Counted from the stretch's first letter, positions 3,383 to 56,730 are shown. The stretch: DNA of 64,000 bases from Penicillus capitatus (GCA_965649825.1 OZ287707.1:186001-250000); one strand, 5' to 3'. The notes: generated by a model from the sequence alone, not told the origin. Numbers and translations: made by a program.

Positions 3383-3544
3383 CTCCGATAAATAAAGGAG
3401 CGATTAAGCTTAAATCACTACGCGCGCTCACAGAGTTTAACAGAAACAAAATAAATGGAATGATTGTTTTAAGCGATGACAGCCTGTGTGATTAGGCTAT
3501 TTTTCTTCCAGTTCGTGTCTGTTTCCATTTGTAAGCATGCCACC

Positions 3545-10349: not shown

Positions 10350-10627
10350 ACTGCCTGTCCATCAAGGGACGAGTTATGACGCATCACGTATTCCCTCCAT
10401 CGAATACGTGGCGCTGATGCCCACTCGTCTCTTGCCATTCATACCAGTGACGCTGTTCAAGAGTATATTTAAGTTTAGACGGAAATCGAATGGCGCGTGC
10501 GTGATTGAGTGTGATATATTCATTCATCATTTCTGCAAAGATGTGGATACCATCTCTTTGATGCCATGCCTTCCGACGTCCCGTCATCTTCCAGATTCCG
10601 CTACGACGCGATTGTGCCTCGAGCGAA

Positions 10628-12265
<1,638 letters not shown>

Positions 12266-12575: not shown

Positions 12576-13270
12576 TTATGCAACAGACAGCTTCTTCTGT
12601 TTGGACTTGGTCGTGCTGTTGTAGTTCTTGGATCGCCTTGCTTTCTGTCTCTTCTTCTCACCATCCTGCAAACACCTCCTTCAACAGATCACACAAACAG
12701 GCAACGCCAGTACTTCATCATCAGAATCGCCAAGCTCTCGAATCTTGAACTGAGGCTCGGAAGGCAAACCACCACCTCCACCACCACCAGGACCACAGCC
12801 GCCTCCACCGCCGCCGCCTCCACCGCCGCCGCCTCCACCGCCGCCTCCGAAGTTGCCGTTGAAGAATCCACCGCCTCCCGAGCTCTCGAGATACATGTAG
12901 ATTCCGAGGAATCCGAGATTCAGGGCGACATTGCGTGCAATGTTGCCGCCCCATCCACCGCCACCTCCTCCTTCGTCTGGAGACTTGGGTGGGGTCATAG
13001 GTGGACCTGTCGTGCGTTTTTTCGTCGTGGTTGGACTGGTTTGCGACTCCCCAAAGATCCGAGTCCTGTTCAAACGCAGAGAGCGAAAGGGACGTGACGT
13101 CGTCCACTGTGCCTACAGCATCATCACCTCGTCCATTCACGGTCTTTCTGAGATGCACAAACCCGTGGGGCATGGCGCATCGACATACGCGTTTCATTCG
13201 CTGTACCACGCACAAGGCGTGAAGGCGGACTACACCATGTCGTGGCTTGCATGCCAATACTGAACGGCAT
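12576..13270 (-). CDS. Glycine-rich, probably plastid-targeted membrane protein (3' end uncertain)
   Basis: Transit-like MPFSIGMQATTWCSPPSRLVRG...RVCAS, intron 13109-13062 region, Gly tracts flanking the hydrophobic segment NVALNLGFLGIYMYL. Confidence 0.6.
12801..12845 (+). repeat. 15-bp tandem repeat (gcctccaccgccgcc)x3 encoding poly-Gly on the minus strand
   Basis: Three exact adjacent copies, directly visible. Confidence 0.9.
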
Positions 13271-13356
13271 GGATGTCAGACAGAAGAACGAAAACGCAAA
13301 ATGAGACACGTTCGTATCATTACGTGTCTCAGCGTTGGCGGCTTTCCAAACGCGAG

Positions 13357-14439
13357 ATGGCAACGACGAATCAGATCAGCAAAAAGAAGAAAGTGCGAAC
13401 GCGATGGTACTGTCAGAAGCCTCATTGAAATGCTCTCCTGTCTTAGTTCGTCGGCGATGGCGTCTTCTATGCCGAGCTGAACGAACTGCTGACCCGTGAA
13501 CTGGCGGTGGATGGCTACTCGGGAGTGGAAGTCCGCGTCACTCCTCTGAGAACTGAGATCATTATTCGCGCCACGCGAACGCAGAAGGTCCTCGGTAAGT
13601 GTGGTCCAGTTGAGAGTTCGTTCGTTCGGTGAGGAGAGTGATGATGATCATATGTCGCCCCAGTCTGATTTAGTTGATGATTTCATGACGGAATTGCGAC
13701 TGATGCGCCTCACACTTTTTGAATGTGTGATAGAGAAAGTGTGATGAGGGATCTTGATATCTAGGCGAAGGTGGTATGCGGATTCGAGAACTGACGTCTT
13801 TAGTACAGAAGAGATTTGGATTTGAGCCGTCAACAGTGGAACTCTTTGTGGAACGTGTGGATAAGCAGGAACGCGGACTCTGTGCCATGGCTCAGGCAGA
13901 ATCGCTGAGATACAAGCTCCTTGGAGGCTTGGCTGTACGCAGGTACGTACGCACGCGTTCGTTGCCGGCAGAGATGCTACGTCATGTTCAGGGCCTGTTA
14001 CGGCGTGCTGCGATTTGTCATGGAAAGCGGAGCCAAGGGATGCGAACTGATCGTGTCCGGAAAACTGAGAGCGCAGCGTGCGAAGGCCATGAAATTCCGT
14101 GATGGTTTTATGCTTTCCGCGGGCGATCCGACGCGTACCTACGTGGACACCGCTGTGCAACACGTTCTTTTGCGACAGGGGGTCTTGGGGATCAAAGTGT
14201 GATGTCACACTTTTCGTGTCCACTGTCTAACGCATGGCTGCGCATGGCAGGTGAAGATCATGAAGGATCATGATCCTTCTGGCAAATTGGGACCCGCTCG
14301 GCAATTGCCGGACATCGTCAAGATTCACGAACCCAAAGAAGAGGAAGTGTACATTCCTCCGCCCGAAATCGATCAACAGCCAAAGGAGTTTGAAGAAGGA
14401 GAAGTGGTGTACGGCGATCCGGCTCCTCCGGTCATGTAA
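13357..14439 (+). CDS. RPS3: 40S ribosomal protein S3 (uS3), 5 exons
   Basis: [25 protein letters not shown]...[12 protein letters not shown]...[53 protein letters not shown]. Confidence 0.98.
13629..13713 (+). ncRNA. Intronic box C/D snoRNA, U31/snR67-type guide for LSU P-loop Gm
   Basis: In the unusually long RPS3 intron 2. Terminal stem GTGAGG/CCTCAC; box C (G/A)TGATGA 13639-13647; D' CTGA 13665-13668; C' TTGATGA 13674-13680; D CTGA 13700-13703. Guide TGTCGCCCCAGT pairs with conserved LSU GCUGGGGCGGCA. Confidence 0.85.
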
Positions 14440-38076: not shown

Positions 38077-38868
38077 ATGTCGACCCCCTATACGGCTTGG
38101 ATTGTTCTCTTCTGCATCGTCTCCGTCGCGGAGATGGGTAAACCGTCATTCCCGTTCACGAATGAACTCGAGTGATATGCTGTGAACAGGATACGCAACG
38201 TCGCGCAGTAGTTTGGCCGTGACAGGCGTGAAGTCGACGCGTGCCTTGAAAGCCTTGAGTTGCAATCCGATGACGGCTTGTTCGTGGGCGAGAACAAACA
38301 GCGCCAAGTTCATAAACTACTTGCAGACAACCACAGATGACGTCTGCACGTGCACATGCCCCAGCAATCAAGATAGACTGGCCCATGACGCGGCAGAATC
38401 TTCCAGCTTTCAATCTGTTATTGCCCTGGAGAGACTGAAATTCAAAGGCTGTGATCTTGACATCAAGAATGGAAACATGAATACTCCACTGCACGATGCT
38501 TGCGAGCACTGTAATGTTCCTCAGGCCGCGGTAAGAAATACACTGTTTCTGTTTTTCCTCTCATTTCGAGATGTTACAGTATCTTGTGAACTCCGGCGCA
38601 GATTTCATGAGCTTGAACAACGACGGATGGTCTCCGTTGTGTCTCTGCGCTGCCAATTGCTCATCCAAGGCTGAGGATCTCGTTAAAAATATGATTAATA
38701 GAATGACCTCCGGAGGTAGCAAGACGTGTGTCATGTGCCAAAGCGGCAAGAGTGCTAGTGCCACGGCAAAGGACCCGAAAATCAAGGAGGTGAGTATATC
38801 TTCGTCGTTTGCGTTTGCCTTCATTCTTTTCCCTGAAACAGGTTATCGCTAAAGGCACCGGCTGCTGA
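38077..38868 (+). CDS. Secreted cysteine-rich ankyrin-repeat protein, type A (4 exons)
   Basis: Signal peptide MSTPYTAWIVLFCIVSVAEMG (intron 38138-38189), CTCTC motif, ankyrin NTPLHDACEH and GWSPLCLCAAN, ends GTGC-stop. Confidence 0.8.
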
Positions 38869-39634
38869 ACTGGGAAGCTTCATGCGGCTGCCTGCCACGA
38901 CTAGATTCCTTTCCTTTGTTGTTGGATGAACCGTTTGTCAACCATGCGTTCCTTCCCGTTGCATTCAGAAATTATTCTCTTCAAAAAACACTTGAACGAA
39001 TCGTGGTTAATGGATTCGAAGAATGTTCCACAAGGATGTATTGAGGCACGAACCGTGCATTGTTAAAAAACGATCCATGTATTGAGGCATGAACTAGCAA
39101 CTGTTCAAATGGAAGATAGTGGTTTAGCTGAACAGTTCAATCAGAAGCGAACGTCGCATCGCGATGTTCCATTGCTTCGCTGTTTGTCTCCGCTTGCTTT
39201 GCGGCATCGACCTCTGTGAACCATCCATCGCTCCAAAACCCGACGCTGTCGCCTACAAGCCGGAAAAACAGAGGATGGATGGACATCCACTAACACAGCC
39301 CGTGAATAGAGTGTCTGAAAAACATCACGCATGAATAGAGTAGCTGAACTGAATGAAAATAAATGGCGAAGACAAAACCTAACAGCCTTGTGAATTTGAT
39401 GCGGAACTTCCCACTTAAACGCAGGTATACGGATATGTCGATGCGAAATCCGCCCTGAAGATTCTAGACGTAGCCGCGGTATTCGCGCCTGGGCCAATAG
39501 TTTACGTACGTCATGTAGCGACAGTCTGCGTTGACGTACAAAAAGCAATTCCGCGACGGAGTCCACAACTTGGCGTTCTGGTCTTATCGAGTTTTCCGTA
39601 CTGGTCGACGTGCCATTTCAGCAACGACCTCCTG

Positions 39635-40426
39635 ATGTCTTCTGTGCGTACCATTGCTTTGGCTTTTTTCCTCGTCGTAGGAACGCGCTACGGTAAGTTA
39701 TTTTAATTCGAAGGCATCCATCAGGAGCCAGAGTGCTGTAGTCTCGGCGGGTGTCGTTCCATCTTCTATGCCCAACCCCGACAATCCCGATACCTGCCCG
39801 GCGAATCTCTGCAGAGCAGCTGTCGAACGAGACGAGGGAAAGATAAGAAGCGCCATTGAGATAGGGACGCCAAACATCTGCAACTGCACGTGCGACCCTG
39901 ACCCCGTGCCGGTCACCAACAAGACGCTCCTCCACGTGACGGCGTTATACGAAGAGTCCGTGGCCTGCGCCAATCTGTTGCTCGACACGCCGCCGAACTG
40001 TTCGGTCAATGTGCTGGACGCGAAGAAAAACACGCCGCTGCACGACGCCGCGGCATCGTGCCTTCCGCCCATGGCATACGTGCGACCTCCATCCGGCTTT
40101 CGATTTGCAGAATGGTGACTGTCGCGTTCAGGTCTTCATGGAGGCCGACGCCGAGGTCGAGCTCGAGAACGATGATGGATACACGCCAATGTGCGTGGCC
40201 GCGTCCACAGACGACCCAAACTGTGCCGGCGTTGTCATCCATTTGGTCGAATACGGGGCAGACATCTGCAAGAAATGTAATGGAACACTGCCTTACGATC
40301 TGGCAGCCAACAAGATCGTGAAAGACGTACGTCCATCTCTCTTACAACGCTGCTAGCATCTCTCCATGTTCACAGATCATCGAACAGAACAACGGCACGC
40401 TGGCAGAGGACGGAGGAATTTGCTAA
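39635..40426 (+). CDS. Secreted cysteine-rich ankyrin-repeat protein, type B copy 1 (4 exons)
   Basis: MSSVRTIALAFFLVVGTRYVSA signal peptide; ankyrin repeats KTLLHVTA, NTPLHDAA, GYTPMCVAA, LPYDLA; ends IIEQNNGTLAEDGGIC-stop; all introns GT-AG, about 50 nt. Confidence 0.85.
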
Positions 40427-41435
40427 AAGCTTAGCTCTGATGGAGCCTGCACAACACGGGTGAAGTGAGGAGGCTGGCATTTTATTGTTTTGCGCCGCTG
40501 ACCCAGCGGTCATCGTCTTTTCTTCTCTTCCACGTCTAGCTGGGATTGTGAATGGCAGCATCTACATCATTGTTTTGCGGTGGTGGATGTTCAATGCCGA
40601 TTGTCATTTGGCAAAAATCAAGTGATGTGACTCGAACGGAGAGGTGTGTTAGAACCACTGAGTTGCTCTCGCTGTCTCCGTCCAATCGATGCGGCTTTCG
40701 GTTCGCAGATCTAAACATCATGTCATCATCGTTCAGACATGAACGTAGACATTCGGTTTCTCACAATAAGTGATTGCATCACACACAGGTATGTGGCGTG
40801 TGTCGCCTCGGTTAGCCCCTTCAACGCTGGGATCGTCACGTCGCATGTGGCTATGTCTGATTTCCATGCCGTTAACGCATCACTCAACGAGAATCGTAGC
40901 AACGTGGGGTGATGCGCCCCAGTTGGCATGGCTGAGACGCCGGATAGCTGCCAGACGGTACACACATCTCTTTATGGCGTCTTGGACATAACTCTACATG
41001 GTTTACTTGGCCTCCATGTTGAGATCTAGGTAACAAAGTATCTGTTCTTCGGAGAGCTTCTTTGATCTCAAGCAAGCCTCCACCGAATGCTGCCCCCACT
41101 TTACTTACTAAATCGCAGAGGGTGGCTTTTTTGAGTGTTGAACACGAGGTTCGCTGTTCCACAGTTCATTATTCTGTCGACACTGTCTTGTGAACTTGAA
41201 GCAGAACTTCCCACTAAAACGAAGGTATACGGATAGGTCGATGCGAAATCCGCCCTGAATATTTCCCGAGAAAGCCACGGTATTCACGCCTGAGCCAGTC
41301 GTTTACGTGCGTCATGCAGCGACGGTCTGCGCTAACATACAAATAGCCATCTCGCAGCGGAGTCCTCAAGTTAAGGTTTTGGTCTTATCGAGTTTTCCAT
41401 ACTGGTCGACGTGCCATTTCAGCAACGACGAGCCG

Positions 41436-42226
41436 ATGTCTTCCGTGCGTATTCTCGCCTCTGTTTTCTTCCTCGTCGTGGGCGCGAGCTACGGTAAGTC
41501 TTTTTAATTCGAAGGCATCCACCAGGAGCCAGCGTGCTGCAGTCTCGGCGGGGTTTCGTCCATCTTCTATGCCCAACCCCGACAATCCCGATACCTGCCC
41601 GGCGAATCTCTGCAGAGCAGCTGTCGAACGTGACGAAGGAAAGATAAGAAGCGCCATTGAGAGCGGGACGCCAAACATCTGCAGCTGCACGTGCGACCCC
41701 GACCCCGTGCCGGTCACCAACAAGACGCTCCTCCACGTGACGGCGTTATACGAAGAGTCCGTGGCCTGTGCCAATCTGTTGCTCGACACGCCGCCGAACT
41801 GTTCGGTCAATGTGCTGGACGCGAAGAAAAACACGCCGCTGCACGACGGCGCGGCATCGTGCCTTCCGCCCATGGCATACGTGCGACCTCTATCCGGCTT
41901 TGCCTTACGCAACGAGGACTGTCGCGTTCAGGTCTTCATGGAGGCCGACGCCGAGGTCGAGCTCGAGAACGATGATGGATACACGCCAATGTGCGTGGCC
42001 GCGTCCACAGACGACCCAAACTGTGCCGGCGTTGTCATCCATTTGGTCGAATACGGGGCGGACATCTGCAAGAAGTGCAACGGAACGCTGCCATACGATC
42101 TGGCAGTCAACAAGATCGTGAAAGACGTACGTCCATCTCTCTTACAACGCTGCTAGCATCTCTCCATGTTCCCAGATCATCGAACAGAACAACGGCACGC
42201 TGTCAGAGGACGGAGGAATTTGCTAA
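41436..42226 (+). CDS. Secreted cysteine-rich ankyrin-repeat protein, type B copy 2
   Basis: Same exon structure and near-identical mature sequence to copy 1; signal peptide MSSVRILASVFFLVVGASYVSA. Confidence 0.85.
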
Positions 42227-42264
42227 ATGCTTAGCTCTGATGGAGCTTGCACATGGGAAATGAG

Positions 42265-42580
42265 GATTGCATTTTATTGTTTTTTTTCCTGCTCACGCAT
42301 CGGTCATTCATCGTCTTTTCGCTTCTACATCTGAGCTGGCATTGTAATGGTAGCATCTACATGTATGTCTTGCAGTGATGGATGTTCAACATCATCTGCC
42401 GAGAATCAAGTGCTTCTCTCCGATGGAACTTACACACGGGAACAAATGAGGATCGCATTCTATTATCTTTTGCGCTGCTCGCTCATCGGCCATCGTTTCT
42501 TCGCATCTACATCTGAGCTAGGACTGTGAAGGGCAGCATCTACATGATTGTTTTGCAGTGATGGACATTCTGATACCATC
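42265..42580 (+). repeat. About 190-bp imperfect tandem duplication in the 3' flank of ANK-B2 (also at about 49090-49410; single copy at about 40460-40600)
   Basis: The unit ...ttttattg/atcttttgc..gctca..catcgg..catcg..ttcttc..catct.agct...gcatctacatg..ttgcagtgatgga... occurs twice in succession. Confidence 0.7.
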
Positions 42581-43311
42581 ACGTGCCGAATCACATGCTG
42601 TAGCTCGAACGCCAACACATGTTAGACCCACATTTGCTTTCGCTCGTTGATCTTCGTTCGATGTGGCCTTCGGTTCGCGGATCCAATCCCCGCGTTATCA
42701 TCGTTCAGACATGAACCCGATCATCGAGTTTCGCAATAAGTCATTGCATGACACACAGGTATGTGGCGTGTGTCACATCGACTGTCCCCTTTTACGCTTG
42801 GATCGTCACATCGTTGCCGTCATGTCTGGTTTCCTTGCCACCGATGCATGATGCGAAGTGGAACACATCAATCAGAGTTTGCGAAGTCTGCACAATCATA
42901 GATTTCGGCCTTCTTGTCACCGTTGCACTGTCAGGTCATGCACAGCACGATCATCTAAGGAGTCTTCATCTGTCATGAATGTCCCTGCTGCGGCCTTGTC
43001 TCTTTAATCGAGTTCTGTGCAGAATTTTTTCAACGTGAATTGTGAGAATGGGCGAAACATGTCCAAGTGTAGAACTATTCGTACCAATCGTCCCTCCGCT
43101 CTTGAGCTCTTCAGCTGAATTTCGTCCACATTTCGCAGATACGCTCCAGTCACGTCAGTAGAGTACCGCGAGCTACACCTCAGTAAAGAACTAGTCTTGG
43201 ACTCCATCCGCTGTGTTAAAGAACCAAGAACTCCAATAGGGAATGGAAAGGAGATTTCTTCGCCCACGCCTCCGGTTGCCAAAGAGACACCATCTCAAAT
43301 GGACTCCTCGA

Positions 43312-43661
43312 ATGCCACCGGCTCCTTCTCCTTCTCCGACAGTTCCCAGTTCATCTGCAATGCCGTTTCCACCCGAGTTGTGCAGTATCGTTGCCCGCTG
43401 CGATCAATTCCTCAATAGAGTAGCCGTCTCGCACAATGTTACTGGAATTCGTGACTGTGATTATCCCGCGGCAAACGGGATGTCTCTCCTACAAAGTCGC
43501 TGTGGATTTCGCGGTCGAGAGTGTCGGCTCTCTGCTGTCTACTGCCACGTCCGAGCTTTGTTCTATCGTTGCAGGTCATCGAACAGAACAGTGGCAGACT
43601 TGTCGAGGACGGCGGAACCTGCTTGGCCAGAAATGATCTACTGTCTTTTCTTTCGGTCTGA
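43312..43661 (+). pseudogene. Divergent, internally deleted/frameshifted relic of the type-B ankyrin family
   Basis: ELCSIVARCD~NLCRAAVERD; then in another frame TGCLSYKVAVDFAVES~NGTLPYDLAANKIVKD; same last intron position; last exon VIEQNSGRLVEDGGTC~IIEQNNGTLAEDGGIC. Confidence 0.7.
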
Positions 43662-44699
43662 CTGCCATCGTAGAGGCACTCCAGTGCTCTGCGAAGCCTT
43701 GTTTCGCTGTGTGCATCGCAGCTCATCGAATTGTCTTTTCTTCAATACGCTTCAAACAAGCGTCTCGTCGACCTTTCCTTCTTGTCGCCACGGCACAGCA
43801 AGATCCAGCTTGGCAGCGATTCGTCGGTGTCGAACGAGTACCTAAACTCCGTGCCGGCGGACGATTTGTCCTCTCTGGCTGATTCTTCTGACTTCATGCG
43901 AGAGCCGCCCATTGGCAGTGGATTATCTTCTGTCTTCGATACCGCAACCCCCGTCCTTTTCCTCTGATTGTCGGCACACTGACACGAACTAGCACTCGGG
44001 ATGACATACAAAGTGGACTCGGGGAGGCGATCACGAGAATCGTGTTGTATCCGAGACAGCAGAAGGCTTGATGGACGACTACTGGGAGGTAGCTCCTGAA
44101 GGAAGGCTCGTCATGGCGTCAAACGTCATTGAGACGCGTCGTTATCGTCACTTCCGAGTGACAGCGACAAACGAAGTCCTCGGCTCGTTGGAAACAGAGG
44201 ACGTTGCGTGACCTTCTGTGACGACTGAATTCGAGTACGCTGACGCCGTTTTGGATGCGATTGACACGCGAAACGTCGCCATGCGCCACGATAGAAGATG
44301 CAAGTGCACGGCGTAAGTTCAACGTTCCACAGAATACTCACCGTTCGCTCTTTCCATCCACATCACCGATTGCGATCCTTTGTGCGTCCAATTGTGGTGA
44401 CGTCCTGCTGCGCGGTCCACTGCCTCCCCCTGTTGAGATCTCCCTTCTCCTGACGCGGGGTGCCTCATGCGACTTCTTCAGCTTGACTTTTCAGGCTTGT
44501 TAGAACTGCTGTCTGCGTCTGGTGACCACCGACTGCATCGGTGTCACACGATAGACGAGAGGGCCAACGATGAGAACATGTCGCTTACAACGCTGATGTC
44601 TGAACCGTCACGCGACTTCTGCCGTGAGCGTCGCCAAGATTGTTCCGCGGTCATGCTCCCGGGGTAGTCTAAACCGCCTTTTGTTGGACGTGTTAACGT

Positions 44700-45560
44700 G
44701 CCTTAGTCGTGTGTGGCGGCGGCAGAGTCTTGTACGCTTTTGCGCGGTCCTGAATGGCTGTAGGTGAAAATAACAGCGTGTAACGGAGTGGTCCGAATCC
44801 TCGGAAGAACTTAGTCGCCGAAAGGCTGTTCAATGTCAGGCTTGTTGTAGCGATGCTACTGTCCTTGATCGCATACACGCTTTTTGAACACAACTCCATC
44901 GTTCCATGTTTCGAAAGAGAAGCGAGGTACTCCGCTCAGGCAAAGAAGACGAGTGTAACGGTAGGTTGAAGTACGTCCATGGCTAATTGTTCAAGTTCTG
45001 CTTGAAGAGGGCGCACGCTTTTTAGAGAAGATCGACCACAAACCTGCAAAACCTTCACCTGTCCTGGTAAAGCACGAATGAAATCGAACGGTCCTTGAAC
45101 ATCTAGAAGAGAGTGTCGAAGTTCTCGTTCTATGTCCTATTTCGTTTTTGGTTTGACGTTTTTGTGTTCTCCCTCCTCGATCAATTTATTCCACTGTTCT
45201 TGAAAACATTAAGAGCCAAACTCCGAATGTCGTGCAATGCGTTGTGCTGTCTTTGCGATGATTGTAACGTTCACTTGTCGACGACGCGTTGTGTGACATT
45301 CTGTGGACTGTCGGAATTTTCTGCTATGTGTTATGGATTTGCTCACAAGTTCTTTGGTAGTTGTGTGGCGCGTATTGAATTTCCCACAGAGGTTTCGATG
45401 TCAATCTCCAATTGCTGTTACTTGGAAGGCTTTGGTTGTATGTAGTGTCGCGCGAATATCGCGTGTGCAGACGAACTTATGCAAATCAAAACGAAGGTCT
45501 GCAGATGGTCGTGTTCTGCTCAAAGACCTGGTTTTTATACCCCCCCCATTTCATGATTCA
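44700..45560 (-). mobile_element. Decayed Mutator-like (MULE) transposase
   Basis: Ordered fragments with stops/frameshifts: CTRDIRATLHTTKAFQVTAIGD*HRNLC, HTTTKELVSKSI, VNVTIIAKTAQRIARHSEFGS*CFQEQWNKL, NENFDTLF*MF, LAMDVLQPTVTLVFFA*AE. These resemble MULE CxWRIHAS..FQV..EHTC, EFGSFEESY, RFKRLFWAF and GMDANNQIFPLAFA. No TIRs found. Confidence 0.55.
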
Positions 45561-45779
45561 TGCTTCACGGCATGTTGACGTCACGACTGACGTCATGGGA
45601 CGTCACATCGGCTTGAACGTCTTCCCCTCCTTTACCTTCGTCTTCGTGACAGTAGTATGCATCTGTTAATTTAGACGATAGTGGCAACGCGCCTTCTGGT
45701 TCCGGCCAACAACCCCTTGTAACGTGGAATGTGTCGAACGTGAGGTGAACGGGCGTTTAAAGCAACAGCGAGTTCTAGA

Positions 45780-46490
45780 TTTCATCGGCTTTTTTTGTGG
45801 ACGAGGAGTCGTTTACGAAGGTCCTACGGGTAGAGGTAGGTCATTTTATCGGTTTAGGACAGCAACCGTGGCATTGAACCGCAGAGATTGTCTGCGTAAC
45901 GTCAGTTCACCTACCTACTCGACAGTTGCACCTGAAGCTACTAACCAATCCATCAAATATTTCTTCAAGATCCGCGGGTCGTACTTTTAGATGCTATTTG
46001 TTTATTCCTCGTAACCAAATCCTTCTAACGTGTGCTCCATGGGGTCTTCTTGCAACTCGCAGAATTCGTCAAAGCTCCATCGCTGGCTAACAATTCGATG
46101 AAAGTCGAGGTTCGGCAGTCAGCCAAGGAAGGCTTACGGAGAACGAAGCACAGTATGGCACGTGTTCGTGTGTACGGATCGCGATTTGACTGCGGAGGTG
46201 CCGAGCGACCTGCATTGCTGTGTATTCCAGACTACCTTGGACGAAAACACGGCCTTCGAATTGCGAAAGGAACAAAAAATCAGCTTTATGTGCGGACTCA
46301 CTCGGCCCCGCACCCTGCCGTAACGGAAAGGGGTGAGGGCCATCGTACGGTCCGCACGTTAAAACCTGAAGCGGATTAAAAGAACGGAGTTTTTCATACA
46401 ATGATTCTGCCCCTTTAATGCGAAACTTCATTTCGTTTGTGTCAGTGGACAGCTGTTCACCTTCATGCGGCCGACCAAGGAATTGCATAA
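45780..46490 (-). pseudogene. Decayed coding sequence of unknown type upstream of the MULE relic
   Basis: Coding-like frame QRWSFDEFCELQEDPMEHTLEGFGYEE*TNSI*KYDPRILKKYLMDWLVASGATVE*... with five TAA/TAG stops; an intron-like GTAAGC...TTAG segment of about 51 nt. Confidence 0.35.
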
Positions 46491-46949
46491 ATTCAAGACA
46501 GTATTGAATGAACAGTCTTTGTAGCTATAAGCCTTCGTCGTATTCGCGTGTGTTTGCTCATCGACAGCGCGACAATTTGTCCAATCAATTTGTTGGGCCA
46601 AATCAACGGTCTCGCAGAAGGTAAATTAGATAGAAAACAGATAGTTGCACGGGATGCGACTCTCGCATTTAGAACGATAGCAAAGCTGCCTTGTCATCTT
46701 AGATGCCGTCTCTGTAGAAACTGCGAGGCAGTCTTCGAGAATTGCAGTACAGATCTCTGCGCGGAGCTGTCAGTGAAGATCCGAGAAGTTCACAGTTAAG
46801 TCCTCGCCTAGCATTGCGGTAAACGTCACTCACGAAGCTCCTATCGATTCACACCTGGCTGTCAAATCTCGTCGCCAAAAGCGAAAAAGCTCCAGACGCA
46901 AGGCATCGTTTGACAAGCACAAGCTTTACTCCTGTCGCTAGACCGCTTG

Positions 46950-47530
46950 CCTTTGGATGCCAGACGTTCTCTGTCTGCTGCAAGAAGCTGTTCGCTGTCC
47001 TCTTCAATTTCGAATCTCACATCGCAATTCCCTATCGTTCTCTGCGATACCAACTCGAGAATTCTTCTGCACTTGTGACATGAGCCACTCTGCCCTCGAC
47101 AGGAGCAGTGCTGTTCACTTCGTAGATCCGTCCTGGCGCTTCTTTACTTTATTAAACGTACGGGATGGTTATTTCCGCATTGCAGTGGATTCTTACCACA
47201 GCCGTTTGTTCTGCTTTTCCGTTTGGTCGCCGTCTTCACATTGTTACCCTTCCTCAGAGATGATATCCAGTGCCGGCTTCTTCACCGACCGTGTTCGCCG
47301 CATATTGGGAAATGCACCTTCTGGATAGGCGTACTTTGACGACATTATTGTCGGTAGTCGAGATCGTAAACTAATGGCCGCATTTCGCGCACTTTCCTCT
47401 CTGTGTTGCAGGATGCCGGGATGCAAATAAATCCACGAAGATTCAGTTTTCTCGTCCATTTGTGCAGCACTTGTGTTTTCCTTCGCTCTTCGCCCTGAAA
47501 CAGGTTATCACAAAAGGCATCAGCTGCTGA
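46950..47530 (+). pseudogene. Relic of a type-A ankyrin gene; only the last intron end and last exon are clearly retained
   Basis: 47504-47530 GTTATCACAAAAGGCATCAGCTGCTGA (VITKGISC*) matches the type-A last exon VIAKGTGC* with the same acceptor ccctgaaacag. The upstream FFCTCD fragment is only weakly similar. Confidence 0.55.
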
Positions 47531-49805
47531 AATACGAAGCTCTAAGACGCTGCCTGTCACGACTAGATTCCTCCTTTGTTGCTGTTGGATGAAACATTTA
47601 TCAACCATGAGTTCCTTCCCGTTGCACTCATAAGCTATTCTTTTCAAAAAACGCTTGGACGAATCGTGGTTAATGGATTCGAAGAATGTTCTACAAGGAT
47701 GTATTGAGGCACGAACCGTGCATTGTTAAAAAACGATCCATGTATTGAGGCACGAACTAGCAACTGTTCAAATGGAAGATAGTGGTTTAGCTGAACAGTT
47801 CAATCAGAAGCGAACGTCGCATCGCGATGTTCCATTGCTTCGCTGTTTGTCTCCGCTCCCTTTGCGGCATCGACCTCTGTGAACCATCCATCGCTCCAAA
47901 ACCCGACGCTGTCTCTCACGAGTCGGAAGATACAGAGTGCCTGAACACCGTCGCGCATGAATAGGGTAGCTGAACTGAATGATATCAAAGGTAAAGACAA
48001 GACCTAACTGCCTTGTCAACTCGAAGACGAACTTCACGCTGAAACGTAGGTATACGGATAGGTCGATGCGAAATCCGACTGAAGATTTCCCGACGAAGCC
48101 GCGGCATTCAAGCCTGAGCTAGTCGTTTCCGTGACGTCATGCAGCGACGGTCTGCGCTAACATACAAATAGCCATCCCGCAACGGAGTCCGCGCGTTTGC
48201 GTTTAAGTCTTATCGAGTTTTCCATACTGGTCGACGTGCCATTTCAGCAGCGACGAGCCGATGTCTTCTGCGCGCATTCTCGCCTCTGTTTTCTTCCTCG
48301 TCGTGGGCGCGATCTACGGTAAGTTATTTTAATTCGAAGGCATCCACTAGGAGCCAGCGTGTTGTAGTTTCGGCGGGTGTCTTTCCATCTTCTATGCCCA
48401 ACCCCGACAATCCCGATACCTGCCCGGCGAATCTCTGCAGAGCAGCTGTCGAACGTGACGAGGGAAAGATAAGAAGCGCCATTGAGAGCGGGACGCCAAA
48501 CATCTGCAACTGCACGTGCGACCCTGACCCCGTGCCGGTCACCAACAAGACGCTCCTCCACGTGACGGCGTTATACGAAGAGTCCGTGGCCTGCGCCAAT
48601 CTGTTGCTCGACACGCCGCCGAACTGTTCGGTCAATGCGCTGGACGCGAAGAAAAACACGCCGCTGCACGACGCCGCGGCATCGTGCCTTCCGCCCATGG
48701 CATACGTGCGACCTCCATCCGGCTTTCGATTTGCAGAATGGTGACTGTCGCGTTCAGGTCTTCATGGAGGCCGACGCCGAGGTCGAACTCGAGAACGATG
48801 ATGGATACACGCCAATGTGCGTGGCCGCGTCCACAGACGATCCAAACTGTGCCGGCGTTGTCATCCATTTGGTCGAGTACGGGGCGGACATCTGCAAGAA
48901 GTGCAACGGAACACTGCCTTACGATCTGGCAGTCAACAAGATCGTGAAAGACGTACGTCCATCTCACTTACAACGCTGCCAGCATCTCTCCGTATTTGTA
49001 GATCATCGAACAGAACAACGGCACGCCGGCAGAGGACGGAGGAATTTGCTAAATGCTTAGCTCTGATGGAGCTTGCACATGGGAAATGAGGATTGCATTT
49101 TATTGTTTTTTTTTCCTGCTCACGCATCGGTCATTCATCGTCTTTTCGCTTCTACATCTGAGCTGGCATTGTAATGGTAGCATCTACATGATTGTCTTGC
49201 AGTGATGGATGTTCAACATCATCTGCCGAGAATCAAGTGCTTCTCTCCGATGGAACTTGCATAACGGGAAAACAAAGGGATTGTATTTTGTTGTTTTTTT
49301 CTGCTCACACATCGATCATTCATTATTCATCATCGCTTCTTCATCTTAGCTGGGACCGTGAAGGACAACATCTACGTGATTGTCTTGCAGTGGTGGATGT
49401 TCAATACCAATTGTCATTTGAAGAGAATCGAACGATGTAACTCGAAGCATGAGGCGTGTTAGAACCACATGTGCTTATGCTCGCCGCCGTCCAATCGATG
49501 CGGTCTTCGGTTCGCAGACCAATTCGCATATCACACTTCGCTCGAACACGAACGTGAGCATTCAGTCTCACGCAATAAGTCACTCAATGAGATGCAGGTA
49601 AGCGGCGTAAGTAGCGTCGGCTGTCCGCTTCGACTCCTTGATCGTTACATCGATGTCGCCATGTCTTATTTACGTCCTGCTGACGGATGATGCGCGATGG
49701 AAAATCTCAATGCGAGTTTCCGAAGTCTGAGTAATCAATCACAAATCTCAGTCTTCTTGTCACTGTTGCATTGTCAGTGCATTCACAGACAACAATCATT
49801 TGAAC
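47490..49805 (+). repeat. Segmental duplication of about 38830-40980 (type-A 3' end, spacer, type-B gene and flank)
   Basis: Long near-identical stretches, e.g. gaatcgtggttaatggattcgaagaatgtt...caatcagaagcgaacgtcgcatcgcgatgttccattgcttcgctg, at both about 39000-39250 and about 47660-47910. Confidence 0.9.
48261..49052 (+). CDS. Secreted cysteine-rich ankyrin-repeat protein, type B copy 3
   Basis: Same exon structure; signal peptide MSSARILASVFFLVVGAIYVSA; ends IIEQNNGTPAEDGGIC-stop. Confidence 0.85.
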
Positions 49806-49901
49806 AGTCTTTCTAAGTCAAGCACAACACCGCTCGTGTTTGTGAAGGTTTGAGTATCGAGATGGCCCATGCGTTTGGTTTTCTTGACGACACGTCGATA
49901 G

Positions 49902-50433
49902 ATGCAAGTAGCAATCGCGGCAGCAACGCTAGAGCTTCGGGCTGGCCGTTTGGATGACGTGCGTAACACGAGTACTGAACCAATTCGCGAACCGTCAAGG
50001 TGTCTTTTCGTCACGACTGTGACCGACATCGCTACATGGCAACCTCTAGTTCTCAGTTTATATCCTCTCAAGAACTTCGCAGACACCGCGGCTACGACGA
50101 TCGTGCTATCTATCTCGCTATCAAAGGCGTGGTATACGATGTATCATCTTCACGGCACCTCTATGGCCCCGGTACACACTCAAGCTTCTGTTCGGTTGAA
50201 CACCTCGTGTTGAAGGGGGTCCATATCACGTCTTTTCCGGAAAAGAATGCGCCAGAGCACTGGCCCTTTTCTCCGTCGCCGAGAAAGACTGCATTGGAGA
50301 CACACATCGGTTAGACGATGATCAATTGGAGGCATTGGAAGAATGGATCCAGAAGTTCAAACTCAAGTACCCAGTGGTGGGAAGAATCAACGATGGTTTC
50401 TTTCAGCGTGTATCGAGTTTTTTGTTCCAATAG
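49902..50433 (+). CDS. Cytochrome b5-like heme/steroid-binding protein (MAPR family); 5' end uncertain
   Basis: ISSQELRRHRGYDDRAIYLAIKGVVYDVSSSRHLYGP/GGPYHVFSGKECARALA...LEEWIQKFKLKYPVVGRI. Confidence 0.88.
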
Positions 50434-50506
50434 CACCGAACAGAATCGGAGATAACATACGTGACATGCTGTATCAAGGTGACAAGCAGAACGCAGGAAC
50501 CACTCT

Positions 50507-52352
50507 TTATCTTTTGACCCACTGAAAAGACTTTCTGGCCTTTGCGCGTCCAGGCTTCTTTCGTTCGACGATCCGTGGATCTCGTTTTAACAACCCTGAT
50601 TCTTTCAGGGATTCCTGATATTCGGTACTGTATGTCTTCAATGCTCGGGCGATGCCATGGCGGACTGCCTGAGATTGACCTGACCATCCTCCTCCCCCGA
50701 CCGTGACCGTAGCATCGAACTGTCCAAGTGTATCCGTTGCCAGGAAGGGACTGAGGACGTAACATCGCCCATCCATGTTCGGAAAATATTCTTGAAGGCT
50801 CTTGTTGTTGATGATGATCTGTCCAGTTCCTTTCCGCAGCACGACAGATGCGACGGAACATTTCCTCTTGCCGACTGCAAGGACATCTCTGTCAGCATCT
50901 ATCTCGGCCTCGTGGACGGGCTTATCCTCCTCGAGTGGCTGCTGTGTTTTTGGGAGTTGCCGCAAACCGACAGACCGATGCACTTCTTGTATCAGGTCCA
51001 GCAATTCTCCTTTCCCTGGGCGATGTTCGTAGACCTCTGAGAGATACTCCCACAAACTGAAGGTGTCGTTTTGGTTGAGTTCCTTTGGATAGAAGCCTTC
51101 ATCTGATGCCCCGCCTTTCTCTAATGTACAGCAAAATGCGCAGTCATGTCTGTACTTGTGTTCGAGGGATACCTAGGATGGATTGCGAGGGTACATTCGC
51201 CATCAACCCGTTTTCCTTTCTTTTCGGGGCATAGTTGTACTTTAGGACCCGAGTTTCTTCTTCGTCATCTGTCACCTCTGGGTCATAATAATTTACGTCT
51301 TCCTCAACTTCCAGGAGTCTCTGTGCTTTTTCGTCTCCCAAAGCATTCTGTCCAGTCCATTTCAAACAACAGATTGCCAAAGAGAGGCACACGACGTACT
51401 CTTGTGACGAGGTAGTGAACGAGAGCATCTCCCAAAACACCCTTGGCCCTCATGACCTCGAGCTCTTCGTATGTAAAACGCCCGTTTCCAACCAATTCGG
51501 CAAACTTTTCTGCTTCCTTATATGTTTCCAATACATCCGAAGCACAGGAATCCAGTATACTCTCCGCATCCTGTTCTCTGATAAGGTTCTCAGAAACAAG
51601 GAGCGACAAATCACTGGGGTGCAGATTTCCAGTCAGGACATAAGGGCCGAGTCGTGTCCACAAAAAATCTGACGAAGCCAACAGCCCTCTGATCCCTGAA
51701 ACGCCACATCGCGGTGGCGATCGAAAACAAACGTACAGTATTCTTGATGATCACTTGCAAAACTAAAAGGACGCTCAGGGGCTGGGGACGTCTTTTCTTG
51801 TATCTCCTTCGTGACGGCATCGGCCACATCTCTGGGGATCATTTCCTTTTCCACGAGGTATTCTATCTCTTCGAGGCCGAGGTCGCCGCTTTGAACGATA
51901 AGTGTCAGATCCTTCTGGCCAAGAAGATTGTTGCGCAGCAGTTCCATCACTTCGACGACACTCAATTGCGAGGTTCCTTGATGCAGCACGGTTCGGATGT
52001 GTTGCTGCGCTAGTGGACTTAGAACGCCTTGATCGACAAAAAACTGCAGATCTCGTTGCGTCATTTTCCTTTCCTGCACTCCCCTCAGCAACTCTGCTGT
52101 CGACAGTGTCCCAGTTCGGACAAGAGGAATGAGGGTTTGCAGCTGAGGGTCTTCGACGTCCCTCCTGCGGTCTGGAGCAGACGCGATCAATGACTCGATC
52201 TTACGCGTCGCCGTTTGCACCGTCGTTCGTCCTTCCAGATCCTCTTCACTTTCTGCCTCCGCTATTGCGGCAGATCCGAATCGCGGACGAGAAGTCAGAA
52301 GGAAGCTACGGATAACTGGCGCATAGCGGGCGGCCCTCAGTTGCAGCTGCAT
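50507..52352 (-). CDS. MRPS9: Mitochondrial ribosomal protein uS9m with very large N-terminal extension
   Basis: C-terminal S9 domain GKRKCSVASV...GGGWSGQSQAVRHGIARAL...RDPRIVERKKPGRAKARKSFQWVKR; presequence MQLQLRAARYAPVIRSFLLTSRPRF; upstream exons join in frame. Confidence 0.85.
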
Positions 52353-52579
52353 GATGATTTCGAAATCCCTCGAACTTCACACCCCCATCAATAATCCTCG
52401 TTACAAGGTCACATCTCCGTCTACCCCGTGGCACATTGTCATCTCTCCGTCAGAAGTTTATATTTCAGCCTCGAAGATTCGTTCAACCTCAGCGTTGTTG
52501 CATATTGACAGCCTCGTTGTATAACTCTTGGTGAATTCACTCGTCGACTACTTTTGCGTTCAGTCCTTGTATAAACATC

Positions 52580-54337
52580 ATGGACTTTGCATTATTCGCT
52601 TTACTTCGCAACAAGTTTCCGAATTTCGATACGCCCCACAAAGAACTGTCTTGTATGAAGCTCCCAGCGGCGAATAGGGAAACGACTTTCCTCGGTGAGA
52701 CTGTTTTGGGACATTGGACTGTTGACGAAGGGACTTGTGTGTAGAGACACTCGATGCGCAACGACTGTCTACGTATATCAAAGCAAAGGCTGCTGTGAGC
52801 AACGAGGAATACGATGGTGTGCGGCGCAGTCCTTCCGAAGCGTCTTTGATTTTCGAGTATGCGTCACCGTGGCAGCTTCAGCGGCTAACGGCCAGTTGTA
52901 CGCGTTTACCGCGGACGGGCACGCAACGGAGTGCCTTGAAAAGCAGTATACGACGCGGACTCATGCTGCTGCCTGGTAACGTATTACTGATGAAAGCGGC
53001 TCAGTCGAAGCGCAAGCATCAGATTGGCTTCGGCGTGAAATCGTCGGTCGGCCAGCGGCCGTACATGGAGGACAGCCACATCATGAAACCCTTCTTTTTT
53101 CGCTTTCCTATTTCTTTGGCGTGTGGCCAGCAATTGATTCCGGACTTTGTGAAGACAGAATTGGAGAAGGTGTCACGGAATGCCCCAGTCGAAGGCGGTT
53201 GCTCTTGGAATTCGTTCAAAAACGAAATCGCAAGCCCCAGAGACGGCGGCGTTCCTTGCGTTTTTGACGAGTTTGATTTATTTCTTATTTGTGATGGACA
53301 TGGCGGTGCTCAAGTGGCGCAATATTGTACAGCAAATTTCAAGAAAATCCTCAAGAAGCAGTTGAAGGCGTCTGTCGAAGAGCGGTACGTAGAACTGTTG
53401 CAGTCCGCTCAGACATCAAAGGGTGAAACGGAGGGCGTCATGTCTCACTCTTCCCAAGAGCTCCTGCCAGAACGCAGCGTCAAATCTGCCGCAAATATGG
53501 GCGAGACGCGAGCAGGGTTTTTGGATCGAGATAACCGAAGACTCAAGCTCTCCGAATCAGTGAGGATTCGAGGATCGGGCGAAATTGACATTCAAGAGAA
53601 CAATGACGGCGCCCAATCCGCCAATGGACTCCCCGGTGCTCAGTGTGGTCTTGACGTACACCATCTTCGTGATTGTCTCTCTCAAAGCTTTCAACAACTT
53701 GATGCCGAAGTCAAAGACCAGGAATTGGGAGATTTTGAAGGTTCCACTGCCTTGGCGGCCCTTGTCGGTAGCTGGCACATCTGCATTGCCAACTGTGGTA
53801 AGCACCTCGCTCTGCCGTCCGTCTGCATGCCCCGATGCTTGTCGTACAGGTGACTCTCGTGCTGTGCTTTCTCGCAATAGCGTCGCTGTGCGACTGACGA
53901 GAGATCATAAGCCACATATCGAAGAGGAACGGAGGAGAATTGAAGAACAAGGGGGGTTCGTAGTCAACGCGTACGGTTGCTCCCGTGTCAATGGTTTCCT
54001 CGCAATGTCTCGGGCCATTGGAGATCATCTAATCCCAGCTGTCATTGCCCAGCCCGATGTGGCTGTCTTGCATAGACATCCAACGGATGAGTTCTTAATC
54101 TGCGCAACAGATGGTCTGTGGGATGTCATGACAGACGAGGAAGCTTGTGACATGACAAGGAAATGCCTGGCACGTGCCGAAGCAAAAGGAGCTAGAAAAC
54201 TATCCACCAGAGTCGCTGCCAATGTCTTGCTGAAAGCCGCTTTAGATAAAGGAAGCACAGATAACATCACCATTGCCGTTGTCGACCTCAGGACACCACC
54301 CCATGATGCCAAAACGGTATCCAGAGAGGCCAAGTGA
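52580..54337 (+). CDS. Protein phosphatase 2C (PPM family)
   Basis: SVGQRPYMEDSH, ICDGHGG, GSTAL, IANCG/DSRAVL, LTRDHKP, LAMSRAIGD, ATDGLWDV, GSTDNITIAVVDL. Confidence 0.96.
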
Positions 54338-54923
54338 AAGTGGATTGTATCATTTGATGTGACATTTCAAAAAAAAAATCGTGTTACATGACAGTTCATT
54401 TTGTGTACATGGTGACCGACTTCATCTCGCTTATTCAAATGACAACCTGCATGAGATGCCTAGTTGAGAAGACGCTTTTGTGGGACGTCCAAAACGCAAT
54501 GTGCAACACCATCATTTGTCTCATTTCTCTAAATATGACGATCATTTGACGGATGGCTTACTGTGTGAGATGCATCAATATCGCATAGATTTTCCACCCC
54601 TCTCGATCAAAGCGCCACTCCGACAGTGAAAATCTGGAACGTGCGAGTGACAAAGAAAACAAGACGCAAGGCTCATAAAGAATATCTCACGAAACCGGAC
54701 TGTTCACTGTAGTGTCTATCTCTATTTTGCGTTGCCCATCTCCATGACTTCATGTTTGTATAGAAAGAAAGAACGCACGCTGAGTACCGGCGCGATCTCA
54801 TCTCTAAGTTTCTACACGCATCGGTACATTGCTCTTTGTATGACATCCGTTAGGGATTCTTCTGATCTAGCATCCCAGATAGAATACATGCTGTTTGTCA
54901 CTTGGTTCGTGCGCCGTCCGACA

Positions 54924-55534
54924 ATGGATGTAATCTCATGTGCACGTTTAGCATTTCTCGTGCATCGTCGTGTTTCGACGGTGAGGTGTCACGCCGCCGC
55001 AGCCGCCACTCGACGCAGTACATACACGCATTCTCAGATGACTGACAGGCATCTTGTGTTTAAGATATCATGACGTGAAACAGAGAAATCGATACCAAAG
55101 ACGCTTCCTTCTGACGTCGCTCTCTTCTCTCTTCGTCTGCTTCGTCCGTTTCCTCGCTGACTGCCGACGAGATATCTATTGTCGCAGATCTCTTCGATCG
55201 CGATCGCCCGTGCCCAGGAAGAAGGAACAGAAGAGACATCTCCCCTCATTCAAGGCACGTCGTTCCTGTTGGATCTCTTCGGCTGTTTTGACTCTTCGAT
55301 AAAGAGATGTTGAGAAAAACGAAAGAGAACAGAGAACAACGAGAAAAGGAAGTCCTCGAGGACTACAACAGAAAAAACTTCAAAGTAAAACGAAGACGAC
55401 TGTTGAAGGACTTCTCTCAAATCGCCGCCACTTGTCTGTCTGTACAGGACTATTTCTCCGTTTCACTGGACTCCGGCGAGTTGAGTGCCGAAACCAAAGA
55501 GAAGATCAAAAAGTGGCTGGATGCGAACAAGTAA
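54924..55534 (+). CDS. PsaN-like thylakoid lumen protein (TAT signal)
   Basis: Transit peptide, RR-F-L twin-arginine motif, ARA cleavage site, SPLIQEMLRKTKENREQREKEVLEDYNRKNFK/DYF...ELSAETKEKIKKWLDANK. Confidence 0.75.
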
Positions 55535-55655
55535 CAGGCAGGTCGTTTAATCAGCAGCGCATTGATAAACTACTGGCACAGTTTGCATACAGTAATGTAC
55601 ATGGCTTTGCAACATGACAAACAGAAGGAGAGAAATGGGCAAAGACTTGACATCA

Positions 55656-56730
55656 TCATCCAGATCTGCCACTGTTGAACTTTTTCTTCAACGCTCTGGA
55701 AAACTCCGTTTCGTATCGTAAGGGCGCCTCCGTTGACGACTCTGTCTTCACCTGCTCGCATTTTTGACGTCTTTTGTCAGAGGTCGTCATCACATACCTT
55801 AAGCCTGTTTGTCCATCCCCTTGCCCAGTCTTTCAGTGGGCGTAGTCGTTCTTGAAAGGTAAGGCCCATCGGCGACAATGACTTCTTCATCAGCATCTTG
55901 ACGTCTTCCATTCCTCGGACATCATACTTCAGGCAGACATAACTCCCGAGCGATACGACTAGAACTCCGCCAACGAGAGATCCATACACCAATCCACGCA
56001 TGGCTACCTGGAATGCATCGATGCCCAGGCCTGGGAGACGAGAGACGGGCCATCTCATACCATGAATTGTCGACGGGCTGCTTCGGCAGCTTCCGGCGAG
56101 AGAGATCGTGCCCTTGATCGCGATAGACCTGTCGCGTCATCGCGGGTCAAGTCTCATGGCATGGATCTTTGAAGCACCTTGGCTAAGACTGGCATATCTG
56201 TTTGGCTGAAGCCTCATTTGCGTTCCGATACCGGAGCCAACAAATCCGGAAATACCCAGCTGACTTCTCCATCGCCGAAATTCAGCTTCGGTCAGCGGCG
56301 GCAGCTTCGCTTTGGCACGCCTGATCCAATCTCGACACCCCAAATACCACAGATCGAACGATTTCACTTTTCATATTCCTGCATCAGTGCTGCCCGTGGG
56401 ACATTTATTCGCGCTCCTTGCTGCAGAATCTCTCCCAAAACCTGCATGCCTTCATGCATCCCAATGGAAAATGGAGTAAACCGTTCACGACTTCGTAGCT
56501 TTGTAGACTCTGCTTCAGAGAGACATGACGGGGAGGTGAACGGTTACCAGTGTCGTCGGAAATAACTCCGCGTTGTTTGAGATATTCAACGTATCTTTGT
56601 AAGTCTGCCTCCTGAAAAGACAGGGATGGACTGTTTCGCAGGCGGAGTGAAGAAGCCAACGGCTTGCCTGTTCTTTCTTAAAAAATGCGCCCTCGCGTGC
56701 CAAAGCAAATCCGCCAAGGATACTCGCCAT
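55656..56730 (-). CDS. Hypothetical membrane protein (about 260 aa, 7 exons)
   Basis: Exons join in frame via six introns of about 50 nt (first is GC-AG): MASILGGFALAREGAFFKKEQ...LSPEAAEAARRQFMVAMRGLVYGSLVGGVLVVSLGSYVCL...; no family recognised with confidence. Confidence 0.65.

Follow-up and report, generated by a model that had tools for sequence, protein, structure and literature searches.

A tandem array of cysteine-rich ankyrin-repeat genes with signal-peptide-like first exons in a putative green-algal genome

The 64,000-nt stretch OZ287707.1:186001-250000 (assembly GCA_965649825.1; hereafter the window, in which all positions are counted from the first letter of the whole stretch) carries an array of small, cysteine-rich ankyrin-repeat genes between positions 38077 and 49052. 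The array comprises four intact genes (A1, B1, B2 and B3) and one degenerate remnant of a further type (type C), and all family genes lie on the + strand. Its best-supported explanation is that it probably encodes an extracellular or luminal ankyrin family that enters the secretory pathway. In the proposed mechanism, a separate first exon of 55–61 nt would encode a cleavable signal peptide, and the mature protein of about 190 amino acids would fold as an ankyrin solenoid of five helix pairs, the size of an N3C designed ankyrin repeat protein (DARPin). Twelve invariant cysteines, predicted to lie mostly in finger loops (CxCxC, a single Cys, CxxC) and helix-helix turns with one near the C-terminus, would form intramolecular disulfides, and possibly one intermolecular disulfide, in the oxidising lumen of the endoplasmic reticulum (ER). 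The N-glycosylated protein would then be exported to the cell surface or wall, where its ankyrin groove would bind a ligand. In types A, B and D the head would be soluble, and in type C the same head would be carried behind an N-x-T-bearing stalk rich in Pro, Ser, Val and Thr, like the chimeric hydroxyproline-rich wall glycoproteins of green algae.

Gene structure, family members and N-termini

The open reading frame (ORF) track splits the family into fragments, and the genes are recovered by splice placement. Gene A1 (type A; 38077-38868, +) has exons at 38077-38137, 38190-38530, 38580-38789 and 38842-38868 and encodes 212 amino acids ending in GTGC*. The three type B genes encode 213 amino acids each, all ending in GGIC*: B1 (39635-40426, +; exons 39635-39692, 39742-40079, 40132-40326 and 40376-40426), B2 (41436-42226, +; exons 41436-41493, 41543-41880, 41932-42126 and 42176-42226) and B3 (48261-49052, +; exons 48261-48318, 48368-48705, 48758-48952 and 49002-49052). 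Every gene has four exons and three introns, and all 12 introns are of the GT-AG type and 49–52 nt long. Intron 1 is in phase 1 in all four genes, so placed that the hydrophobic N-terminus occupies its own first exon, and the positions of introns 2 and 3 are common to types A, B and C. A 52-nt GT-AG intron (53798-53849) in an unrelated PP2C gene of the window indicates that introns of about 50 nt are normal for this genome. These gene models bear out the intact members that an earlier reading of the DNA (the original prediction) had proposed at 38077, 39635, 41436 and 48261 with first introns of 49–52 nt.

The acceptor of type B intron 2 was placed at GTTCAG, which gives an intron of 49–53 nt in B1–B5 and was chosen because it restores the intron length seen throughout the family and puts 15 residues before the next repeat, exactly as in type A. 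An alternative intron of 31/36 nt, ending in TTTGCAG or AACGAG, also keeps the frame and was dropped in favour of the GTTCAG acceptor. Intron 2 of B2 (41881-41931; 51 nt) is in frame and has no stop codons, so that the ORF track shows a single long ORF at 41569-42156. The acceptor-proximal sequence of this intron is unlike that of B1 and B3, and of all the copies B2 alone might yield an isoform that retains the intron and is longer by 17 residues.

The family as a whole totals 11 intact members and two broken copies, of four types (A–D), in two ENA metagenome assemblies. The first assembly, ERZ25074695, contains a 23-kb contig at 20x coverage (ctg327768_20x) that is 100% identical to window positions 38635-56057. 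Other loci of this assembly hold B4 (L001, 9599-10382), B5 (L002, 4431-5217), C1 (L002, 1-1250; cut at the contig end, with exon 1 missing) and the broken copies psiB6 (L004), in which TGA replaces the glycine codon of DEGK, and psiB7 (L005), which has a TAA stop and truncations. The second assembly, ERZ26696514, contains a similar array on a 4.08-Mb contig at 180x (L006), in which D1o (4984-5760) represents the fourth type, D, and is accompanied by B6o (7506-8296), A2o (11333-12137), B7o (12775-13556) and C2o (15264 to the locus end, where the sequence stops before the ankyrin domain). The synonymous divergence (dS) between the two organisms is about 0.56–0.9, and splice sites, intron positions and the 12 cysteines are kept between them.

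Relatives found in protein searches are exon-sized, unannotated fragments on contigs of these two ENA assemblies. A profile search of 5.8 billion proteins found members in one ENA assembly only, and its scores drop from 100 bits (the family) to 60 bits or less (generic ankyrin proteins). An exhaustive search returned 11,117 proteins at E ≤ 0.001; the best 150 of the 11,117, which reach down to about 87 bits, are mostly unnamed multi-repeat ankyrin proteins and also include fragments of the family. A scan of JGI metagenome contigs for the family pattern gave 345 pattern matches, none of which was confirmed. The family had been described as lineage-specific, and this agrees with its confinement to two ENA assemblies among 5.8 billion proteins and with the lack of members in the JGI metagenomes.

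A signal-peptide-like first exon is found in 10 of the 11 members and in all four types, the eleventh (C1) being cut by the contig end. Signal peptides were called from the best 10-residue Kyte-Doolittle mean together with the (-3,-1) small-residue rule. The N-termini open with a short n-region, and their uncharged core of about 11–14 residues reaches a best 10-residue mean of 2.7–3.5. The predicted cleavage motif of type B is V-[ST]-A (VSA|G, VTA|G), at residue 22; that of A1, whose first exon encodes MSTPYTAWIVLFCIVSVAEM, is S-V-A (SVA|E), at residue 18. No second hydrophobic segment is found elsewhere in the proteins (maximum 19-residue hydropathy of the remainder ≤1.25). Among other ATG-initiated open stretches of 20 codons in the window, 11 of 1130 (1%) score as high, and all the family N-termini lie above the 99th percentile of this background hydrophobicity. 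The first exons of types A, B, C and D have little in common beyond the initial MS, and their length is 55–61 nt across the family. The type A signal peptide is identical at 18 of 21 residues between the two organisms (A1 and A2o), with the whole protein at 63% identity.

The hydrophobic signal peptide expected from splicing is thereby recovered by heuristic means, as hydropathy values of 2.7–3.5 and small-residue sites. Translation from an internal MPNP start, which would bypass exon 1, is disfavoured: there is no methionine at that position in B4, B5, B6o and B7o, so that in these genes the exon 1 ATG is the sole start upstream of the domain. The extracellular or luminal location originally proposed is supported by signal-peptide-like exons at 10 of 10 visible 5′-ends and by the type C stalk described below.

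Ankyrin fold, conserved cysteines and the type C stalk

Types A and B both match the Pfam profiles Ank_2 and Ank above the gathering cut-offs (27.3 and 21.1 bits, respectively), with 35.3 and 30.1 bits in A1 and 37.9 and 27.6 bits in B2, as expected from the ankyrin repeats that had been read from the sequence. An AlphaFold2 model of B2, built with the B2 query and database fragments as the alignment, shows five helix pairs at a mean predicted local distance difference test score (pLDDT) of 79.8. In blocks of 10 residues, positions 41 to about 180 mostly score 88–97, with a dip to 68 at the CxCxC loop (71–80). The top Foldseek matches in the PDB are all ankyrin proteins or DARPins (E about 1e-7), with template modelling (TM) scores of 0.83–0.88 for the best DARPins. 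The predicted mature protein has about 190 amino acids, and its domain is the size of an N3C DARPin.

There are 13 cysteines in each of B1–B3 and 14 in mature A1 (15 with the one in the signal peptide); the counts of 13 (type B) and 14 (type A) given previously are reproduced, as are the CxCxC motif and the sequons NCT, NKT, NCS and NGT. In an alignment of types A, B and C, one pair of which has 26% identity, twelve cysteine columns do not vary. Type D and the second organism keep the same 12, apart from one C-to-F change in B7o. In that protein CQKF stands in place of CxxC, so that the second Cys is lost, and a CC pair is gained just after the predicted cleavage site; to judge from the sequence, this gain could be a compensatory re-pairing.

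In the B2 model, three finger loops contain conserved cysteines: the loop that follows helix pair 1 (C66, C68 and C70), the one that follows pair 2 (C106) and the one that follows pair 4 (C178 and C181). The helix-helix turn of pair 3 has C126 and that of pair 4 has C163, and where the TPLH histidine would stand, pair 1 has C43 and pair 4 has C153. Of the remaining two, C38 is located ahead of the first helix and C213 at the end of a low-confidence tail. The CxCxC motif had been located before the first repeat; the motif itself stands, and in the model it falls instead in the loop after a cryptic N-terminal helix pair. Similarly, the cysteine described as the last residue of the protein is indeed last in A1 and B1–B3, but one residue comes after it in A2o (MSCG*) and seven in D1o, so that "near-terminal" is the more accurate description. 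Types B and C have a conserved tail motif, ED-G-G-x-C, which comes after an NGT/NRT sequon in type B only, C1 having NGGK there. The NKT and NGT sequons are conserved. From the arrangement of cysteines in the model we infer that the conserved residues form disulfides that staple neighbouring finger loops and turns.

Type C differs in carrying a stalk. In C1, 6.9 copies of a 63-nt repeat encoding SPNVTVSPMPAPNVTVPSPSI lie in frame ahead of the ankyrin domain. Pro makes up 27% of the first 200 residues, Ser and Val 18% each and Thr 10%. Of the 18 N-x-S/T sequons in the complete protein most fall within those 200 residues, with NVT and NAT types in the repeat. Its counterpart C2o begins with the signal-peptide-like MSASGVFTLLFLLIFTAG, after which SPN[VA]TAP-type repeats extend over more than 270 residues. 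APPPP, APPPS and PSPS motifs occur in both C2o and C1, and the dominant unit is SPNVT. A signal peptide, a Pro/Ser-rich stalk laden with sequons and a Cys-rich globular end together would make up the architecture of a surface or wall glycoprotein. This is the strongest argument for a location at the surface or in the wall, and the predicted architecture is hard to reconcile with a cytosolic location.

Coding constraint is evident in the substitution pattern. The ratio of nonsynonymous to synonymous substitution rates (dN/dS) is 0.15–0.24 among the B copies (0.21–0.24 for B1 against B2 and B3) and 0.13–0.24 for B-type pairs, with the exception of the within-array pair B6o/B7o (0.38); it is 0.45 for A1/A2o. 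Exons 2–4 share 97% identity among B1–B3 and 83–87% with B4 and B5, and the introns share 88–90% and 63–73% in the same comparisons. Intron lengths vary by one or two bases between copies, and exon indels are all multiples of three. By these codon-level comparisons, the family genes are under purifying selection. Exon 1 of B1–B3 (39635-39692, 41436-41493 and 48261-48318) has a different pattern: its identity (80%) is below that of the introns, and its length is fixed at 58 nt. On these small counts, the pattern suggests fast, length-constrained evolution of the signal-peptide exon.

The likely source of the DNA has a bearing on what the N-terminal signal means. The closest named relatives of the FAD2-type desaturase beside the array are two Caulerpa lentillifera proteins (62–65% identity), followed by land plants at about 45%. 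A chloroplast-type ferredoxin-nitrite reductase has a short Ser/Arg-rich N-terminus and no hydrophobic signal. The window and related loci also encode PPR, RWP-RK, U-box (followed by a WD40-like ORF), mTERF and PP2C proteins, the PPR and WD40-like assignments being read from ORF translations, and the G+C content of about 50% is inside the 40–52% range reported for bryopsidalean genomes. With moderate confidence, this gene content points to a photosynthetic green alga, perhaps near the siphonous ulvophytes, with a primary plastid. Since such a plastid with a plain transit peptide is served without a hydrophobic signal, the signal of the ankyrin family would mean the ER, and plastid targeting is unlikely. 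The bipartite plastid-targeting signal of a complex-plastid alga was also considered and was rejected on the evidence of the green-algal FAD2 relative and the plain transit peptide of the nitrite reductase.

Alternative explanations and known systems

Several points weigh against a secreted, disulfide-bonded family. Cysteine-count parity varies between members (12, 13 or 14), with non-conserved extras making several counts odd, and with odd totals (13) in several members not all cysteines can pair within one chain. CxCxC and CxxC could together bind metal instead of forming disulfides. The full type C architecture is assembled from two genes, C1 without exon 1 and C2o without the domain, and the signal-peptide call rests on hydropathy and rule-of-thumb analysis. 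The green-algal placement rests on few genes. Finally, no ER-retention or wall-anchoring motif was identified in the proteins, which fits luminal or vacuolar residence too.

A more specific version of the secretory explanation is offered tentatively. The family may be a natural, disulfide-stapled "extracellular DARPin", for which green algae of this lineage would have turned the cytosolic ankyrin solenoid into a secreted recognition module, produced free (types A, B and D) and on a wall-anchored glycoprotein stalk (type C). The near-C-terminal Cys, within the ED-G-G-x-C tail that comes after an N-glycan site, would be available for covalent oligomerisation or wall cross-linking. Wound-plug aggregation, gamete adhesion and microbe recognition in a giant-celled alga are examples of the roles that such a module might have.

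It is unlikely that the proteins are secreted effectors acting on or in a host, symbiont, grazer or competitor and binding its proteins. A signal peptide followed by ankyrin repeats is the architecture of the effector classes of Phytophthora sojae and of Plasmodiophora and Spongospora (PMC11139960, PMC12503489, PMC4471660). Tandem duplication, pseudogenes and diversification into types are all found in the family, type A evolves faster than type B (dN/dS of 0.45), and exon 1 of B1–B3 diverges faster than the introns. However, the source looks like a photosynthetic green alga and no known parasite, and selection is purifying overall. With 12 conserved cysteines and N-x-T sequons, the proteins are better suited to remaining outside the cell than to entering the reducing cytosol of a host. 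The type C stalk suggests that its protein is attached to the surface of the cell that makes it. Beyond generic ankyrin, no similarity to the oomycete and plasmodiophorid families was seen, the scores dropping from 100 to 60 bits.

Residence in the endomembrane system (ER, Golgi, vacuole or a vesicle store for wound plugs), where the proteins would be luminal binders or chaperone-like factors, is likewise doubtful. The evidence for entry into the secretory pathway serves this explanation equally, and wound-response proteins are kept in store by siphonous green algae, among them lectins, whose genes have undergone heavy duplication in Bryopsis (bioRxiv 10.1101/2023.11.22.568388). Nevertheless, the C-termini GGIC, GTGC and MSCG have no K/HDEL or other recognisable retention signal, and a Pro-rich glycosylated stalk such as that predicted for type C is typical of wall and surface proteins.

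It is very improbable that the proteins do not enter the secretory pathway at all, the hydrophobic stretch being a membrane anchor or an organelle-targeting sequence and the cysteines of a cytosolic protein binding zinc or being acylated. Ankyrin repeats are overwhelmingly cytosolic, and CxCxC and CxxC resemble metal-binding or palmitoylation motifs. Diatom dAnk1-3 act on the cytosolic face of a biomineralisation vesicle, but these proteins have no targeting sequences (PMC9894196). In the present family, cores of about 11–14 residues followed by small-residue cleavage motifs are short for a transmembrane anchor, and a plastid protein of this genome has a non-hydrophobic transit peptide. The more than 200 residues of N-x-T-rich Pro/Ser repeats between signal and domain in type C would also be odd in the cytosol. 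An annotation artefact or a decaying, functionless pseudogene array, to which the broken copies psiC (the type C remnant of the window), psiB6 (TGA) and psiB7 (TAA and truncation) might point, is effectively refuted for the intact copies by dN/dS well below 1, by intact frames in 11 members and by splice sites, intron positions and 12 cysteines kept across a dS of about 0.6–0.9.

The secretory explanation places the family beside several described systems. In P. sojae, ankyrin proteins with signal peptides have been proposed as a new class of effectors (PMC11139960). In the secretomes of Plasmodiophora and Spongospora, no structural cluster is larger than that of the signal-peptide ankyrins, one of which, PbANK1, binds host MPK3 (PMC12503489), and secreted ankyrins of Plasmodiophora brassicae and Spongospora subterranea are also covered elsewhere (PMC4471660, PMC7317818). 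The likeness lies in a signal peptide followed by few repeats, in lineage-specific duplication and in presumed protein binding outside the producer. As described in the available text of these sources, however, the oomycete and plasmodiophorid proteins have no conserved-cysteine framework and are proposed to act inside host cells, whereas the present family has 12 invariant cysteines, N-x-T sequons, a stalked subtype and a putative green-algal source. The profile search of 5.8 billion proteins revealed no specific homology to these families. The family consists of candidate secreted ankyrin proteins and is not assigned to any named effector family. The original prediction regarded it as an undescribed system. 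This is overstated: signal-peptide ankyrin families have already been described in other lineages (PMC11139960, PMC12503489, PMC4471660). The combination found here, a 12-cysteine solenoid of DARPin size with conserved sequons, a stalked subtype and a putative green-algal host, did not turn up in the searches made of the literature and databases.

The N3C DARPins are the closest in structure, having the same size and fold with five helix pairs (TM 0.83–0.88 and a root-mean-square deviation of about 2–4 Å to 2xeh, 4j8y and 5hry). They are cysteine-free and fold without disulfides, whereas in the present family two repeats have a cysteine in place of the TPLH histidine, and other cysteines lie in three of the finger loops and at two helix turns.

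Green-algal chimeric hydroxyproline-rich glycoproteins, such as the volvocine pherophorins and the agglutinins, consist of a Pro-rich rod with globular, Cys-containing heads. Type C is alike in its putative signal peptide, its long Pro/Ser-rich tandem-repeat stalk and its compact Cys-rich terminal domain. It differs in that its head is an ankyrin solenoid rather than a pherophorin or other known wall-protein domain, and in that its repeats are SPN[VA]T units with sequons rather than classical Ser-Pro3-5 blocks.

Two algal systems offer looser parallels. The diatom proteins dAnk1-3 are small, lineage-specific algal ankyrin proteins tied to cell-wall formation, without a targeting sequence and located on the cytosolic face of the silica deposition vesicle (PMC9894196). 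They are unrelated to the present family in sequence and topology, the latter having signal-peptide-like N-termini and coming from a source that is no diatom. Use of dAnk as a luminal precedent was dropped, the proteins being cytosolic and free of targeting signals (PMC9894196). BPL-1/Bryohealin of Bryopsis is also a lineage-specific, heavily duplicated family of binding proteins in a siphonous green alga (bioRxiv 10.1101/2023.11.22.568388), but it has the F-type lectin fold, a known sugar ligand and a role in wound aggregation.

In textbooks, ankyrin repeats are intracellular, disulfide-free modules. If the secretory explanation is true, the ankyrin fold would be adaptable to an oxidising extracellular milieu, and the family would be a natural template from which to design DARPin-like binders stabilised by disulfides. 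The wall and matrix glycoproteins of green algae would also gain a new kind of head domain, in a lineage close to the siphonous ulvophytes, whose wall, wound and adhesion proteins are poorly known. Prokaryote-style gene calling on metagenome contigs left each member in unannotated pieces, and the exon for the signal peptide has 58 nt; such families are for these reasons invisible in current protein catalogues.

Duplication, pseudogenes and genomic setting

The start-to-start spacing is 1.56 kb from A1 to B1 and 1.80 kb from B1 to B2, and B3 lies 6.8 kb further on, beyond psiC. The type B genes are part of larger duplicated units on the + strand. The unit with B1 (38809-40870) is 87% identical to that with B3 (47471-49811) over 38809-40594 and 47471-49216, and 89% identical to that with B2 over 39387-40594 and 41187-42389. 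The unit with B2 (41182-42966) shares 86% identity with 48007-49811. A unit of about 190 nt that starts from the last codons and stop of B2 and B3 is tandemly duplicated directly downstream of each (42225-42599 and 49051-49404), its copies being 75–77% identical to each other.

The degenerate type C copy, psiC (about 43243-43622, +), lies between B2 and B3 and was delimited by blastn, tblastn and three-frame translation. It keeps a Pro-rich stretch, the start of the domain ("PPELCSIVARCDQF...NVTGI") and, in a different frame, the tail "VIEQNSGRLVEDGGTC", while most of the ankyrin repeats have been deleted internally and the stop codon is lost. Its blastn matches are L002 579-710 and 1087-1922, at 73–78% identity. 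Its presence shows that a stalked copy was formerly part of the array.

The array is flanked by the FAD2-type desaturase (34.6-36.0 kb) on one side and by a Ribosomal_S9-family gene (Pfam; 50.5-51.1 kb) followed by the PP2C gene on the other. Pfam searches found no transposon domains in 10 ORFs in and around the array, and no dispersed repeat is common to about 75 kb of loci from the same genome except the gene units and their flanks. The earlier description of a TE-rich (transposable element-rich) accessory island is therefore not sustained, given the ordinary flanking genes, the lack of transposon domains in the ten ORFs and shared repeats that are the gene units themselves. An Rfam scan of the window gave no matches.

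Other loci of the same organism have coverages of 21x, 28x and 39x, beside the 20x of the contig that matches the window. This spread suggests separately assembled haplotypes of a diploid or heterozygous eukaryote in the sample.

At L002, at least three cytochrome P450 genes (2564-3751, 9612-10763 and 15082 to the end, −) are interleaved with C1 and B5. The spacer of this locus is partly homologous to window positions 43464-44278 and 46819-47083, by which the two arrays are paralogous segments. At L004, psiB6 adjoins a 999-residue HEAT/TPR-like ORF (3381-8602, −) with a weak NACHT match beside it. About 2 kb upstream of B4, L001 carries a gene (about 4400-7830, +) in which a trypsin-like domain (Pfam Trypsin, 38 bits) is apparently fused to at least six ordinary ankyrin repeats. 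The catalytic His (WVLTAAHC) and Asp (DIAMLQL) are kept and the active-site Ser is replaced (GDIGGP). An upstream exon encodes MTWILLLIFAIAS, which is signal-peptide-like in appearance, and with this gene the genome would have another secretory-type ankyrin architecture, unrelated to that of the array.

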